DNA of 64,000 bases, from positions 124,001 to 188,000 of IMG/VR virus record IMGVR_UViG_3300009093_000035, one strand, 5' to 3'. The notes beneath the pieces are model-generated. The model was not told the DNA's origin and did not search any database. It saw nothing but the letters and a program-made list of their open reading frames with translations. The translations under genes were made by a program, and so were the position numbers. Below, one piece after another: positions 554 to 64,000 of the stretch. The stretch's first letter is position 1. Each line of letters begins with the position of its first letter.

Positions 554-1807
554 TCAGAGCTTCTTCATGACGTCGGTCCACTCTTCGAGGGACTTCCGGT
601 TCCGACCCACATCGGCCTCCGTAGCGGGCTGGACCACTCCGTTGATCGTGAATCCGGAGCTGCCGTTGGCGTTCGCCTCCAGGAGCTTCTCGTAGAGTTT
701 CACCTTCATCGGGACGAACTTCTTCAAGATCGTCGTGTCCGCTCCGGGGAAGTCCGAGAGGAACTCCGACATCTGAGCCGCCTCGGAATACTCCCCGAGG
801 CCGGTCCACTGAACGTGGCCCTTCTCGTCGAGGTACATCGCTCCGGCGAACTTCAGGTAGGTCGAAGCCTTCGGCTTGTTCCAGCGGCCCGTCTTCGGGT
901 CCATCGTCTGGGAGAGGAAACGGTAGCCCTTCCCGGAGTTGAACTCCAGCCAGAACTTCGCCTGGGTTCGGAGCTTGAACCCGTAGGGGTAGTCGTCGAC
1001 CACATAGGCCGAGTTCGGATCAGTGTGGCCGTAGAGGGGCTTCTTCGTCGAGGCCTTCTTCTCGAACTTCCCGCCCTTGGACTCGATCTTCTTCCGATCC
1101 GCGTCGGTGAGCCGATCCTTCTTGGCCTTGGAGTCCATCATCTCCTGCCACTCGGCTTCGTCTTCGTTCTTCGCCGGTCGCCAGGCGATCACTTCCTTCT
1201 CGGAAGCGGCGTGGTTCGACGGCATCCAGAGATCGTTCTCCTTCGCCGCGAACTCCTCCAGCTTCTGGAGGAACTTCATGTCCGCATCATCGAGAGCCTC
1301 GTAGGCCTCGTCGAGCGTCTTGTACTTCTCGTCGAAGTAGTCCCCCACCATCGCCAAGAACTTCTTCTCCACGTCGGACTCGGCGCCCTTCATGTGGTTC
1401 TTGATCCCCTTGATCATGCTCTGAGTCATGATCCCGCCCGTCTTCGAGAGGAGGGGGAGGAGAAGGGGGCGAAGCTCGGGCTTCTCGTGAGCGAGCCGAA
1501 TCGTAGCTGAACGGAGGTTGGTCATGGCTCGCTTCTCGTTGGGATGTTCTCGGAGATACCGCTCGCGAATAGAGGGATTCTCCCACTGAGGGAAGATGAA
1601 CTCCATCCCCTCCTGCTCGTAGGGAACGCGATTCTTCTTCAGCCAAGCGACGAACAGGTTGGCGGTGCCCCTGGTCCCCCACTCGACTACCGCCCGCGAA
1701 TCGTTCGCCTGGGGATTGCGCGTCGAGTAACTTGAGTTGCCGAACGTGTTCTCATCGTCCGCATCTCTCATCGCTCTGACGAGATCTTCGAATTCGTGGA
1801 AAGCCAT
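554..1807 (-). CDS. Multi-module protein with an internal LRSATIRLAHEKPELR tag; putative head cargo
   Basis: 417 aa. Internal Met at 1525 begins the tag. Modules are separated by KRA/KTG/KKAS motifs. C-terminal domain reads YVVDDYPYGF...WNKPKASTY. Confidence 0.75.
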   Translation of the reverse strand: MAFHEFEDLVRAMRDADDENTFGNSSYSTRNPQANDSRAVVEWGTRGTANLFVAWLKKNRVPYEQEGMEFIFPQWENPSIRERYLREHPNEKRAMTNLRSATIRLAHEKPELRPLLLPLLSKTGGIMTQSMIKGIKNHMKGAESDVEKKFLAMVGDYFDEKYKTLDEAYEALDDADMKFLQKLEEFAAKENDLWMPSNHAASEKEVIAWRPAKNEDEAEWQEMMDSKAKKDRLTDADRKKIESKGGKFEKKASTKKPLYGHTDPNSAYVVDDYPYGFKLRTQAKFWLEFNSGKGYRFLSQTMDPKTGRWNKPKASTYLKFAGAMYLDEKGHVQWTGLGEYSEAAQMSEFLSDFPGADTTILKKFVPMKVKLYEKLLEANANGSSGFTINGVVQPATEADVGRNRKSLEEWTDVMKKL

Positions 1808-1808
1808 C

Positions 1809-2447
1809 TCACTCCACCACGATCACGACGGAAAGATCGCGGACGACGGGGACCGCCCCGTACACCGCGAGCTTCGGCTTCACCTTCTTCAGGAGGGCGC
1901 TGAAATACGCCTCGTGGACTCTCTGGTCGAGGTGGCTGACCTTCTTCTTGTAGGCCCAATCGGTGTACGGGAAAGTGAGGTCGAACCAGTACTGAGCCTG
2001 ACCATCCTCGACCTTGAAGGACGAGTAGGAGGACCTCTTCGGGAGGATCGAGAGAGCCTCCCGAACGATGCGCTTGTCTTCCTCGGGACCGGCCGCGACG
2101 CGACCGAGAGCCTTCTCTCGCCGCTCTTGGGCTTGCTGGGGAGTGAGACCGATCGCCTTCGCTGCCTGACGGATCGCCTCTGACCAGGTCTTCCCGTAGT
2201 AGCCTTCGACCCCGAGCCCGCCCGCCGAACTGGCGCGAGTGACTCCGCGTCGAGACTTCCAGATCGAAGCTGTCCACTCCGGTCCGAGGAGGATCTTCAC
2301 GAGCTTGTCGACGGTTCGAGCCGACTGGCGATCGAGGATCGCCTCTTCGGCCTCAGCAGCAGCCTTCGCCAACAACGGCAGAAGATGCTCCCGAAGCTCG
2401 GGCTTCTCGTGGGCGAGTCGGATCGTGGCTGAGCGGAGGGATGCCAT
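1809..2447 (-). CDS. Hypothetical protein with an N-terminal LRSATIRLAHEKPELR tag; putative head cargo
   Basis: 212 aa, SD-like AGGGAG before the ATG, preceded by CGGT-N7-CTAT. Confidence 0.8.
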   Translation of the reverse strand: MASLRSATIRLAHEKPELREHLLPLLAKAAAEAEEAILDRQSARTVDKLVKILLGPEWTASIWKSRRGVTRASSAGGLGVEGYYGKTWSEAIRQAAKAIGLTPQQAQERREKALGRVAAGPEEDKRIVREALSILPKRSSYSSFKVEDGQAQYWFDLTFPYTDWAYKKKVSHLDQRVHEAYFSALLKKVKPKLAVYGAVPVVRDLSVVIVVE

Positions 2448-16907: not shown

Positions 16908-17435
16908 TCACCGGGCCGCCGCCCGGAGACAATGCTCTACGAAGTCGGAAGGCGGGCGAACGGCGTGCTTCTCGATGTAGTGGGCGAAGCCCTCGGGCCA
17001 GACGTAGGAGTCGTCGGTGAGGTCGGCCGAACCGTTCCGTACGCCGCACATCCTACAGTCCGACCATCCTCGGTACTGAGAAGCCGTCTTCCCGCCCCGG
17101 ACGTAGCTGAGGACGATCTCCCGTTCCGAGGCGTCCCAAGTCGGGTCTACGCTCGTCTCTACGGCCGGAAGGTCCATCTCCCCCGAGCCCTCGTAGATCC
17201 CCCACGAGGCCGGTACGGGCTTCCAGAAGCCGACCTTCGGTAGGCTCGCGAGTCTCTCGTTCCGCGCTCGGATCTTCGCGATCTCCGCGTCGGCCGGGAG
17301 CGCGTACTGATCCAACCCCCCTCGGGTCATCCTGATCACGCTCGCTTGCCTACCCACCAGAAGCGGGAGGAGAAACGGACGAAGCTCGGGCTTCGAGTGA
17401 GCCAGCCGGATCGTCTTCGATCGGAGATCGGTCAT
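16908..17435 (-). CDS. Tagged protein (LRSKTIRLAHSKPELR) with C-terminal CxxC...WPEG..HY..H domain; putative head cargo
   Basis: N-terminal tag ending in RQAS; late motif upstream. Confidence 0.8.
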   Translation of the reverse strand: MTDLRSKTIRLAHSKPELRPFLLPLLVGRQASVIRMTRGGLDQYALPADAEIAKIRARNERLASLPKVGFWKPVPASWGIYEGSGEMDLPAVETSVDPTWDASEREIVLSYVRGGKTASQYRGWSDCRMCGVRNGSADLTDDSYVWPEGFAHYIEKHAVRPPSDFVEHCLRAAAR

Positions 17436-61847: not shown

Positions 61848-62476
61848 TAGACCCCCACCAAGAAAGCCGCGAGGACTCGGGCCGGGGTAAGGGCCGTCCG
61901 CCGCGTGTGTAGATCACGTACGGAGCCCCAGAGAGCTAGGAGGTCGTTCCGTAGGTTCGGATCCGAAAGACCCTCCTGGATGGCTTCTACGAGCGCGAGG
62001 AGCACAAACTCCTCGTCCCCCTTCGACTCCTTCAGCTCGGAGACGATCTCGGACCAGTTCTTCCCCAGGTAGGCCTTCAGGAGCCGGTCGGCCTGGGTAC
62101 GGCTAAGCGAGACCCGCTCGTCCACCCCCGGAACGAACGTGTGGAGGGTCCGAGACCGAAGAGTGGGGATCACCCCACCGAAGTCCCACGCCCAGAGGAA
62201 GGGTCGAATCTTCCCCGGTACGAACTCCTCGATCGTCTTGAGAAGGACGTCCCCCACCTCGGGAGTGATCTCGTCCAGAGGACCGACCACTACACCCCAA
62301 GGCTTCTCTCCGATCGGAGTCTGACTCAGAAGAGACACCAACTCTCGGGCGTCCCCCTTCTTCATAGCCTCCCCAGAAGTACCGAAAGGAAGAACTAGCC
62401 CATATTCCTTGGCCTCATTCTTCGCTGCGGCTTCTGACCCCGGGCCGTGATAGAGTGATACGGATCCGATCTCCAT
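61847..62476 (-). CDS. Truncated DNA polymerase III delta-prime-like subunit
   Basis: LYHGPG, DVLLKTIEE, VIPTLRSR. Confidence 0.7.
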   Translation of the reverse strand: MEIGSVSLYHGPGSEAAAKNEAKEYGLVLPFGTSGEAMKKGDARELVSLLSQTPIGEKPWGVVVGPLDEITPEVGDVLLKTIEEFVPGKIRPFLWAWDFGGVIPTLRSRTLHTFVPGVDERVSLSRTQADRLLKAYLGKNWSEIVSELKESKGDEEFVLLALVEAIQEGLSDPNLRNDLLALWGSVRDLHTRRTALTPARVLAAFLVGV

Positions 62477-62495
62477 GAGAACGGAACCTTACGCC

Positions 62496-64000
62496 CTAGA
62501 GCTTACCTTTCGACTCCAACGCCTGGTACACAGTCGGGTAGTTGGTCTTCATCTCCCCTCGACCAATACCACCAAGGTACGAAGCGACCTGCTGAAAGCT
62601 TCTACCGTCCTCGACCATTTCCATGGCCTTGTCTTCCTGGTCTCGACGGAAGGAATCGAGCTTCCCCTTAGCACCGGCTTGCCTCGACGACTCCCAGACC
62701 CTCGTCCCCAGGCCGCTGCTGTTCAGGGTGGCGACCTCGATCTTCACCCCGTTCTTCGAAAGCTTGTAGTTGGCGCGAAACCCGCCGTGTTCCACGTTGG
62801 CGTGGTCCATCTTCCAACCGGCCTTCTCCAAGGCGTCGGTCACGTCGGTGTCGTTCTTCTTCTTCGAGGTCCAGGCCAAGGCCCCCGCGACCGGAGGAGT
62901 GAGACGGATCCCCGCCTTCTTCAGATCCGCTACGAAGGCCGGAACATCGGCCGCCTCCTTCAAGACCGGAAGAAGCGTCGACCGGAGTTCAGGCTTCGAG
63001 TGAGCGAGACGAATCAGTTGGGAGCGGAGGGCCATACGAGGTTGAGTTGATAGGCTTCCTACTTTCGTAGGTTCCCACTTCACCGTCCCGCGAGTCTTCT
63101 CCAAGGCATCCTGATACTCCTGATCGGAGGGTTCCTTCTTGGTCATCCGGGCGGGCTTGAAGGTTTCGAACACGCGGAGGTTCGAGGCTGGGATACGACC
63201 TTCGTAGGCGACCGTCCCCTTCGCTCGAAGGGTCGAGAGCATCTTCTGTTCGAACTTCCGGGCGATCTCGTCCGCGTTCGGCTTACCCCTCCAGTTCCCC
63301 TTGAAGTGAACATCCTGTTGATCGGAGGGCATCTCTGGCATGACGCTACTCAGCCATCCGCCGTTGTCTTCGTCGAGACGAAACTTCGTGAAGTCGTTCA
63401 CCTCGACTTCGAGGACTACGGCGATCGACCTATCGATCGAAGCCGCCCGCGCCGCGTACTTCTCGGCTTCGGAGACCTTCGTGGTCAGATAGACCATGCG
63501 ATCCGAATAGCCCTTGATCACGTCGTTGGAGTAGGCGTCCTCATCAATCCCTGTAGGACTCCCGGGACGCAGACCCTTGATCTTGATCACCTTCCAACGG
63601 ACCGCCGACGTTCCGTGATACATCTTCACGGAACCGAAGCTCTTCGAGGAGACCTCGTCGACCGTGTCGACTTCGCTCGACCCGAGGATCTCTCCGACTG
63701 TCTTGTTCCTCCAGACAGGAGACTTGAAGATCCGGTAATCGCTCTGGACGAACCCGCCCTGTAGGAGCGCCTTCAGAATCTTCCGAACCTTCCGAGGATC
63801 GTCCTCCAGCTCTGTGTCGGCGTGAGGGTACGCGTACGAGCCGTTCCCCTTGATCGCGGGATACCGAGACTGGGTCTTCGACTCAAACGGGCTGAGGTCG
63901 AGCGTTCCCGTGCTCGGGTCTACTCCGATGATCGGAGAGTAGTAGAACTTGTCGTCCTCTCGATACGAGAGACGGGCGCTGACGCCAGTTAGAAAGAGAA
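62496..64000 (-). CDS. Multi-module protein starting beyond the window: ADP-ribosyltransferase-like domain, internal LRSQLIRLAHSKPELR tag, C-terminal module
   Basis: Frame is open from 63998 with no stop. MYHGTS..GLRP..VYLT..AEKYA..VLEV..IP resembles H-type ART/Tpt1-like folds. Internal ATG at 63035 begins the tag. Confidence 0.75.
   Translation of the reverse strand, partial: LFLTGVSARLSYREDDKFYYSPIIGVDPSTGTLDLSPFESKTQSRYPAIKGNGSYAYPHADTELEDDPRKVRKILKALLQGGFVQSDYRIFKSPVWRNKTVGEILGSSEVDTVDEVSSKSFGSVKMYHGTSAVRWKVIKIKGLRPGSPTGIDEDAYSNDVIKGYSDRMVYLTTKVSEAEKYAARAASIDRSIAVVLEVEVNDFTKFRLDEDNGGWLSSVMPEMPSDQQDVHFKGNWRGKPNADEIARKFEQKMLSTLRAKGTVAYEGRIPASNLRVFETFKPARMTKKEPSDQEYQDALEKTRGTVKWEPTKVGSLSTQPRMALRSQLIRLAHSKPELRSTLLPVLKEAADVPAFVADLKKAGIRLTPPVAGALAWTSKKKNDTDVTDALEKAGWKMDHANVEHGGFRANYKLSKNGVKIEVATLNSSGLGTRVWESSRQAGAKGKLDSFRRDQEDKAMEMVEDGRSFQQVASYLGGIGRGEMKTNYPTVYQALESKGKL
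63050..63063 (-). promoter_or_regulatory. Intragenic putative late promoter AGT-N7-CTAT
   Basis: 14 nt upstream of the internal tag ATG at 63035. Confidence 0.45.

Follow-up and report, generated by a model that had tools for sequence, protein, structure and literature searches.

The Alt protein of bacteriophage T4 is an enzyme of the R-S-E type with an ADP-ribosyltransferase (ART) fold, and the site of the T4 protease is L/I-x-E. The scaffolding protein of phage P22 carries at its C-terminus a single coat-binding, basic amphipathic helix-turn-helix (HTH) of about 30 residues, which is enough to bring a fused protein into the procapsid. The capsid-targeting sequence (CTS) is all that the diverse internal proteins of T4 share (PMC3012670), and in T4-type genomes repeat cassettes at gene boundaries, the PeSLs, are recombination sites for modular shuffling (PMC2839356, PMC4122927). 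Here, we describe an open reading frame (ORF) that runs across the end of a 64,000-nt stretch (bases 124001-188000, in the following the window) of the IMG/VR virus record IMGVR_UViG_3300009093_000035. In this ORF a domain with a predicted ART fold is followed in frame by a 28-aa peptide that recurs in many proteins, hereafter the tag, and by a small alpha/beta domain, module Y. We read the locus, with a probability of about 0.6, as a gene for one multi-domain protein of 539 aa, whose parts were joined at the tag by recombination and which has no internal promoter of its own.

The virus record is linear, comprises 248,579 bp and has an estimated completeness of 56% (CheckV). The GC content is approximately 61%, and matching DNA was found in rhizosphere metagenomes (three DNA sequencing runs and no RNA run). 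All translations were made with genetic code table 11. In the window, the open frame extends on the minus strand from 63998 to a stop codon at 62496-62498. The whole ORF covers L001 1501-3120(-), L001 being the locus around the ORF with flanking DNA past the window end, and its start codon is situated 115 nt past that end at the window-equivalent position 64115 (L001 3120). Since the first 27 residues are kept in the closest relative, P0004, this upstream ATG is regarded as the genuine start. It had been claimed from the window alone that a domain with the motifs HGT-S, VYLT and YA reads without a stop into an ATG and the tag. This was found to be correct, with the ATG of Met361 located at 63035-63033. 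On either side of the junction the GC contents at third and second codon positions (GC3 and GC2) are 0.75-0.78 and 0.43, respectively, and the ribonucleotide reductase gene nearby is alike. Due to this equal codon-position GC on both sides, the entire frame is considered to be coding. The parts of the protein and further tagged genes of the window are listed in Table 1.

Table 1. Parts of the 539-aa protein and other tag-bearing genes in the window. pLDDT, predicted local distance difference test.
Feature	Position in window	Strand	Evidence
N-terminal beta-rich domain, aa 1-149	63669..64000 (only aa 39-149 in window)	-	Homologue conservation, invariant R84; AlphaFold2 pLDDT 50-90; no fold assigned
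Predicted ART-fold NAD-lobe domain, aa ~150-355	63051..63668	-	Foldseek, VIA, profile vs PDB sequences, BFVD
Nine-residue linker (GSLSTQPR region), ART domain to Met361	63036..63062	-	pLDDT <50 over aa 351-358
Tag, aa 361-388 (M-A-LRSQLIRLAHSKPELRSTLLPVLKEA)	62952..63035	-	Predicted helix-turn-helix hairpin
Module Y, aa 389-478, small alpha/beta domain	62682..62951	-	AlphaFold2 secondary structure; 74% identical to P0013
C-terminal helical tail, aa 479-539, and stop	62496..62681	-	AlphaFold2; not in P0013
Second protein with internal tag (tag aa 96-124, window 1436-1522) after 95-aa N-terminal domain	554..1807	-	
Adjoining tagged gene, N-terminal tag (MASLRSATIRLAHEKPELR...)	1809..2447	-	
Tagged gene, N-terminal tag (MTDLRSKTIRLAHSKPELR...)	16908..17435	-	

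The origin of the present gene becomes apparent from its closest relative. P0004 (466 aa, 82% identical) was found on three Logan contigs from three runs (locus L008) and shares the N-terminal domain, the ART domain and the linker-Met-tag junction, which is then followed by a different module of 90 aa, module X. Behind the stop codon of P0004 lies a separate gene, P0013 (119 aa, L008 5883-6242), which starts with Met-Thr-LRS and the tag, is preceded by a good Shine-Dalgarno (SD) sequence and encodes the counterpart of module Y. As in our phage, the next gene is that of the DNA polymerase III delta' subunit. The module to which the ART domain is fused thus exists as a free-standing tagged gene with its own ATG and SD sequence, and in this respect the proposed fusion to a tagged module holds. 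In a blastn comparison, positions 2-1068 of our locus align with 2-1068 of L008 (80%) and positions 1091-1432 with 1419-1763 (75%), and our single tag matches both tags of L008, tag1 and tag2. The sequence preceding Met361 is homologous to that before tag1, minus a 9-nt indel, and the sequence following our tag is homologous to that after tag2. Within the tag, informative sites are of type 1 at the first two positions and then mostly of type 2 with some reversals (a mosaic of 11 followed by 222...). Due to the tag1-like upstream flank, the tag2-like downstream flank and the mosaic in between, the junction is placed within the tag or at its edges.

The simplest reading of these alignments is that the arrangement ART-tag-Y arose when two copies of the tag recombined. 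In the ancestor that our phage shares with the 82% identical relative, the ART gene would already have been in frame with the tag. In our lineage, a crossover between this tag and the tag opening the next gene would then have removed approximately 325 nt, i.e., module X, the stop codon, the spacer and the ribosome-binding site, so that ART-tag became joined straight to module Y. The tag-coding DNA, which is repeated genome-wide with about 75-82% identity, offers the homology required for such an exchange, and the ATG of Met361 was most likely once the start of a gene and is no longer in use. Because P0004 has the same junction in front of a different module, the ART-tag fusion predates the arrival of module Y. 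The simple loss of a stop codon, as put forward in the initial annotation, therefore does not describe the last step, since the relative is already an ART-tag fusion and the difference amounts to a swap or deletion between two tag copies. For the first ART-tag fusion, stop loss and recombination may both be considered. Distant ART homologues (at most 42% identical) show no tag fusion. Most of them stand alone, with a length of about 300-400 aa, and end near the tag position, and some lie in clusters of tagged genes; the homologues in IMG/VR are likewise stand-alone, with about 300-350 aa. Among the relatives, for which a check for a stop before 63035 had been suggested, the distant homologues P0005 and P0006 stop near the tag position, and the closest relative is fused.

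A second swap at the tag is seen for the ORF at 554..1807 (P0002). The similar internal Met and tag that had been noted there were recovered as Met96 and the tag behind a 95-aa coding part. In the related locus L026, an N-terminal tag joins the C-terminal domain directly, and both the 95-aa N-terminal part and a 130-aa middle region of P0002 are missing. A third case of an internal tag is located outside the window at genome positions 100200-100682, where a 58-aa N-terminal part (KWCLYTSDGDRLLGRHPSKDKAENQERAIQ-like) precedes the tag.

It had further been assumed that the tagged gene keeps its own promoter and start inside the ORF. The proposed promoter motif AGT-N7-CTAT at 63050-63063(-) is its only match in the window, and shuffled windows contain a mean of 1.88 matches, with at least one match in 86 of 100 shuffles. 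On the gene strand of the whole record the motif occurs five times, and other spacer lengths give 0-6 matches. The occurrence of the motif, most of which lies in the nine-residue linker, is at chance level. Its CTAT is part of the Leu-Ser codons of an SLST sequence that is common to the closest relative, where the spacing is N4 and not N7. CCTATC shows no preferred distance to ATGs, and of its 45 sites on the gene strand only 2 are found 45 nt or less from a called start. A sigma-70-like site was not found in 62300-64000, nor was anything found in AGTAGG contexts. A genome-wide search for k-mers enriched upstream of crude gene calls yielded stop-codon words, AT-rich words and some GCGTAA/CGTTAC words only, none of which matches AGT-N7-CTAT. 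Likewise, the internal start finds little support in the predicted pairing to the anti-SD sequence. In the 18 nt before Met361 the pairing energy is +2.2 kcal/mol, the poorest among the tag Mets, compared to a median of -5.3 kcal/mol for called genes, a 90th percentile of 0.1 kcal/mol for ordinary in-frame internal ATGs and -8.1 kcal/mol for the free-standing gene P0013.

The ART-like nature of the upstream domain, also part of the initial annotation, was supported by several comparisons. An AlphaFold2 model based on the homologue alignment (pLDDT 74.5 overall and 80-94 in the core, predicted template modelling score 0.75) displays the split beta-sheet fold that binds nicotinamide adenine dinucleotide (NAD). 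In a Foldseek search against the PDB, the top of the list consisted of ART-fold proteins throughout, with pertussis toxin S1 as the best match (E=1e-4, probability 1.0). EcPltA, the Rhs toxins TreTu and TreX, MbcT, Tpt1/KptA, cholera and heat-labile toxins, diphtheria toxin and Scabin were also matched. The VIA aligner placed Tpt1/KptA first (Z 7.5-8.8, root-mean-square deviation 2.4-3.8 Å, 83-97 residues, 19-30% identity), followed by TreX (7.8), pertussis S1 (7.0), cholera toxin (6.5), PARP16 (6.3) and DarT1 (6.0), with Scabin also within Z 6-8.8; all of these alignments span model residues ~145-355. Among PDB sequences, the three best matches to the family profile are Tpt1 proteins (E 0.025-0.05) at the lYHGT..GLkPG motif. 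The best viral models in BFVD are those of Vibrio phage nt-1 (full length, E=1e-9), Bacillus phage G (Gp53 and several paralogues) and phiRSL1, and proteins labelled DarT, RNA 2'-phosphotransferase/Tpt1-like and PolyVal ART follow lower in the list. Taken as a model-based assignment, the ART fold of aa ~150-355 is well supported.

For the 539-aa protein, Pfam gave no match at E<=1, the Tpt1 model (PTS_2-RNA) included, and neither PHROGs nor Pfam gave a match to named ART toxin families; PHROGs recorded two weak families without function over aa 158-314 (PHROG 13493 / 11974). A search with the full 539-aa protein against IMG/VR loci had no match. Across 10 metagenome homologues, the invariant positions are R84, Y166-H167-G-T-S170, G181-L-x-P-G185, Y195, D198, G202-Y-S204, Y209, Y220-A-x-R223, D248 and A303-Y304-x-G306. 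They include the three motifs of the domain, YHGTS (with H167), VYLT (with Y209) and AY (A303-Y304). The His of the H-G-[ST] motif lies on the first NAD-binding strand, as is typical for the H-Y-E clade, and aligns with the YHGT of Tpt1. According to alignment and model, the domain appears to be of the His type (diphtheria toxin/PARP/Tpt1), with the NAD lobe of Tpt1/KptA as its nearest counterpart. Candidates for catalytic residues on later strands are Y203, Y209 and D248, which are invariant among the 10 homologues, and E249/D250, which are nearly so; distant homologues have D-D at this place. Two assignments were rejected. An R-S-E (Arg-type) ART does not agree with a His in place of the Arg on the first strand and with the missing match to named ART toxin families. 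A Tpt1/KptA RNA 2'-phosphotransferase proper is at odds with the missing Pfam match and with 150 beta-rich N-terminal residues that hold a single invariant Arg; membership fails in that the alignment is confined to the NAD lobe, and no RNA lobe with the catalytic residues was found.

The tag is a motif of 28 aa, LRS.LIRLAH.KPELR..LLPLL, with the conserved residues R4, R9, H12, K14 and R18. A profile search of the six-frame translation revealed 12 copies in the 248-kb record, all on the minus strand. Their amino-acid identity to one another is 73%, and the coding DNA is about 75-82% identical over ~70 nt. At the third codon positions of conserved tag residues the pairwise agreement is 45%, compared to 31% expected from composition, which indicates that selection keeps the peptide and not the DNA. 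When a profile built from 13 tags was run against 1.84 billion cluster representatives, 3,241 metagenomic protein clusters were matched at E<=1e-3, and at E<=1e-10 the number was 298. The tag is common to many otherwise unrelated proteins. In 149 scanned proteins from the best 150 matches, which are enriched for multi-copy proteins, two tags were found in 119, three in 25 and four in two. Of the tags in this set, 113 stand at the N-terminus, 153 are internal and 58 lie no more than eight residues from the C-terminus; spacers between the tags are rich in K, E and D, and a G-K-x-A-S preamble recurs before internal tags. A less biased sample of 20 IMG/VR loci (contigs of up to 252 kb, locus GC 0.40-0.65) contains about 15 N-terminal tags. 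In four of the 20 loci, coding sequence precedes a tag that is internal or C-terminal, and in three of these four a Met is kept 2-4 residues before LR, which fits former N-termini.

Outside viruses the tag is nearly absent: a scan of one genome per species for 185,579 cellular species gave a single match. This match (L029) is situated on CAZEFW010000138.1, a 26-kb contig of a metagenome-assembled genome (MAG) of an uncultured member of the Myxococcales. It may be a phage contig that was binned with the MAG or a prophage, and provides a weak host hint. In a tblastn search against the INPHARED phages the tag alone was matched, in one uncultured phage of 485 kb. The tag-bearing group consists of uncultured huge phages with contigs of up to 350 kb and GC contents of 40-65%, from soil and other metagenomes. 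In this group the tag appears mainly to stand at the N-terminus of small and variable accessory genes, of which there are many, and a place within longer proteins or at their end is less frequent. Pfam domains in tagged proteins are varied and comprise LRV repeats, RelA/SpoT, WGR, an intein and several domains of unknown function. No names for tagged proteins were obtained from Pfam or PHROGs, and ten that were looked up in protein clusters are all metagenomic and nameless; an ESM Atlas look-alike search with a three-tag protein gave no usable match. The full-length model shows the tag as a pair of helices (358-373 and 375-387), and the linkers on either side of it have pLDDT <50. About half of the tags in the record end with L-K-E-A. 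By eye, the tag resembles a shortened LRV/HEAT-like unit, and the Pfam model does not match it. Its identification as an LRV repeat (PF01816) was rejected, as three tagged proteins gave no match at E<=1. LRV matches in 3 of 89 tagged proteins represent separate repeat arrays adjoining the tag, and the record itself holds one sub-threshold match. P0060, P0108 and P0110 (on a 352-kb ENA contig and others) have a tag at both ends and true LRV repeats right after the N-terminal one. Beyond the window, at genome positions 100200-102519(-) (L004-L007), four tagged genes are arranged in tandem.

The ORF is part of a set of minus-strand genes in the order class II ribonucleotide reductase, DNA polymerase III delta and delta', ART gene and a 100-aa gene with an N-terminal tag. 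The latter (L001 3125-3427(-), window-equivalent 64120-64422) lies directly upstream of the ART gene. Past it, an array of 44 tRNA genes follows on the same strand (genome 188,442-199,553, with L001 3447-3946(-) inside it), out of 45 tRNAs in the record. In L008, the place of the 100-aa gene is taken by an unrelated 84-aa gene without a tag, and eight tRNAs and a gene for a Ro60-like protein with a von Willebrand A domain are found just upstream of the ART gene. Pfam gave nothing useful for the 100-aa neighbour and the ORF 554-1807. The adjacency to the tRNA array and the Tpt1-like NAD lobe are only a hint at a nucleic-acid target of the putative ART. Upstream of distant ART homologues, at a distance of about 1.6 kb, tRNAs with a CTA anticodon occur (L015 1327-1400 and L019 1415-1490; amber-reading, labelled Pyl by ARAGORN). 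They are situated on IMG/VR contigs of 35-310 kb, in which TAG recoding is possible. The ART homologues P0005, P0006, P0007 and P0008 (loci L011 and L013) carry another short C-terminal motif, (K/R)VA..(H/Y)L, e.g., RVAGRYL, RVANLYL and VALRHLQ, which may be a second shared peptide of related phages. The C-terminal tail of our protein (62499-62681(-), 61 residues) is modelled as four confident helices (pLDDT ~90) with the pattern G.S...VA.YLG......TVYQAL. By eye it would be a small HTH-like module added at the 3' end, and in Pfam the HTH reading of this tail received no match.

Several points weigh against the reading of the locus as a single recombinant protein with an addressing tag. Where inside the tag the crossover took place is resolved only weakly, as the site pattern is a mosaic with reversals, and the alignments fit an insertion in the L008 lineage no less well than a deletion in our own. 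SD pairing is likewise weak for two true N-terminal tagged genes (-0.9 and -2.1 kcal/mol), so that the poor pairing at Met361 speaks against internal initiation and does not exclude it. In X2, a second rhizosphere sample, contigs cover 62771-63038 and 63073-63878, and none bridges the 34 bases between them. For the third catalytic residue of the ART domain, D248-E249-D250 are candidates from the alignment, and the function ascribed to the tag is drawn by analogy. Matches to prohead protease (PF03420, PF04586) and HK97 capsid (PF05065) models were not obtained in the record, which is uninformative given its incompleteness and one control that gave no signal. The X2 gap at 63038-63073 lies just upstream of the tag ATG, and a divergent variant with 12 differences covers 62771-62922; strain-level variation around the junction in X2 is possible. 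The gap would also be expected if the fusion were an assembly chimera in which two repeats of a tag that recurs in the genome had been collapsed. We consider this extremely improbable, because the tag copies are too divergent for a collapse, frame and GC3 signal are continuous, and the same ART-linker-tag junction occurs in the three contigs of the relative. Moreover, a 44-kb Logan contig that was built independently, probably from the source run, is identical to the IMG/VR record at every base across the junction, where its depth is 26.

The loss of a stop codon between the ART gene and a tagged gene with its own promoter and ATG, giving rise to a long ART-tag-Y product and a nested short tag-Y product, could explain why Met361 precedes LRS by two residues as in free-standing tagged genes. 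It would also be in agreement with the free-standing module Y in L008, with the distant ART homologues that stop near the junction, with a CTAT located 14-16 nt upstream of the ATG in three other tagged genes, and with real tagged genes that lack a strong SD sequence. Nested expression is nevertheless unlikely: the promoter motif is at chance level and its CTAT belongs to codons that the relative shares, CCTATC keeps no preferred distance to ATGs, the anti-SD pairing is worse than the 90th percentile of in-frame internal ATGs, and the junction of the relative precedes another module, i.e., the fusion is older than the arrival of module Y. In sum, the fusion and the ART fold of the initial annotation stood, and no support was found for its internal promoter and start or for simple stop loss as the last step. 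A single protein joined at the tag is thus retained as the preferred reading of the locus.

With regard to the function of the tag, a short basic hairpin on many unrelated, fast-changing accessory proteins, mostly N-terminal, with disordered flanks and confined to viral contigs, fits a docking or address peptide. By analogy to the T4 CTS or the P22 scaffolding HTH, we infer that the tag is a common peptide of this kind which binds one shared partner, possibly the procapsid interior or scaffold, and that the ART domain would travel with whatever the tag addresses. In its widest form, and only tentatively, it is tempting to speculate that the tag is a universal, position-independent label that loads changing effectors (ART, RelA/SpoT-like, WGR and others) onto one partner, most attractively the procapsid interior, for delivery with the DNA, while the tag DNA doubles as a recombination site at which cargo is shuffled and strung together into multi-tag proteins. 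Alternatively, the tag could be a processing site at or near which polyproteins are cut by a phage protease, freeing ART and Y, which is compatible with an address function. The location of tags at module boundaries between low-confidence linkers, proteins with 2-4 tags and K/E/D-rich spacers, the G-K-x-A-S preamble of internal tags, and the L-K-E-A ending, which is like the T4 protease site, would suit such cleavage. Yet the KEA ending is not universal, and no protease gene was found in the record, which as a fragment is uninformative here; we regard processing as rather unlikely. Instead of an address label, the tag may also be a basic nucleic-acid-binding or self-associating helix hairpin, i.e., a single LRV/HEAT-like repeat that tethers accessory proteins to DNA, to RNA or to one another. 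The conserved basic residues, the K-rich linkers of multi-tag proteins, the tags immediately before true LRV repeats in three proteins and the position of the ART gene at the end of the tRNA array could be understood in this way. However, the Pfam LRV model does not match the tags, and a dimer prediction with two copies of the 40-aa tag region was without support (score 0.02, which is not evidence for or against binding). We regard tethering as hardly probable.

Taken alone and without the context of the tag, the locus is no more than an ordinary gene fusion; the tag family, as yet uncharacterised, is a more interesting result than the ART fusion. The locus illustrates well how modules can be joined in frame at a coding repeat that they share, and recombination of this kind, from one copy of the repeat to another, would be a simple route to multi-domain effectors. 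If the tag is an address or docking peptide, the accessory proteome of an entire group of uncultured huge phages can be approached through its sequence (>3,000 protein clusters), and the present gene, if the address and recombination readings are true, is a case of cargo shuffling caught in the act. The ART-fold family itself is widespread in large phages (nt-1, G, phiRSL1) and uncharacterised.

Among known systems, the tag has its two nearest parallels in the CTS and the P22 scaffolding HTH. As with the T4 internal proteins and Alt, a common 5' sequence occurs in variable gene clusters with swapped modules, and one tag bearer is an ART-fold enzyme, as is Alt. However, the tag has 28 aa and no sequence relation to the CTS of about 10 aa, and it is also found internally, C-terminally and in 2-4 copies, whereas the CTS is strictly N-terminal. 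The tag thus lacks the N-terminal restriction and short length of a CTS, and about half of its copies end with L-K-E in place of a general L/I-x-E end. The likeness to Alt that had been drawn initially does not extend to the catalytic type, as our ART appears to be H-type (HGT) and Tpt1-like and not R-S-E; Alt itself was not compared, and packaging and cleavage are putative here. In case of Tpt1/KptA, the domain has its best structural match (~85-97 residues) and its best sequence match, the latter at the YHGT...GL.PG strand-helix that binds NAD. By eye, a basic residue before V-[HY]-L-[ST] is shared as well, and the adjacency of our ART gene to the tRNA array may be listed as a further likeness. 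Only the NAD lobe (chain residues ~86-186) aligns, however; the N-terminal RNA lobe and the R-H-R catalytic residues are unmatched, and a 20-residue insert with invariant Y195, D198 and GYS sets our family apart. Among the ART-like proteins of large phages (nt-1 R9TEX3, phage G Gp53 and paralogues, phiRSL1), that of nt-1 has the same predicted fold over its whole 368 residues (E=1e-9), but these proteins are without a tag, and only our protein and its 82% identical relative are fused. The hairpin predicted for the tag is of the same kind as the P22 scaffolding HTH, to which the tag has no sequence relation; the P22 element is C-terminal and single, and binding of the tag to a capsid is hypothetical. 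As with the PeSLs, short repeats at gene boundaries accompany the insertion, deletion and replacement of neighbouring genes between close relatives. In contrast to these promoter-terminator cassettes, our repeat is coding, and crossovers therefore yield in-frame protein fusions and not gene swaps only. From the CTS, the P22 HTH and the PeSLs the tag differs in sequence, length, position independence, occurrence in multiple copies and in being coding.

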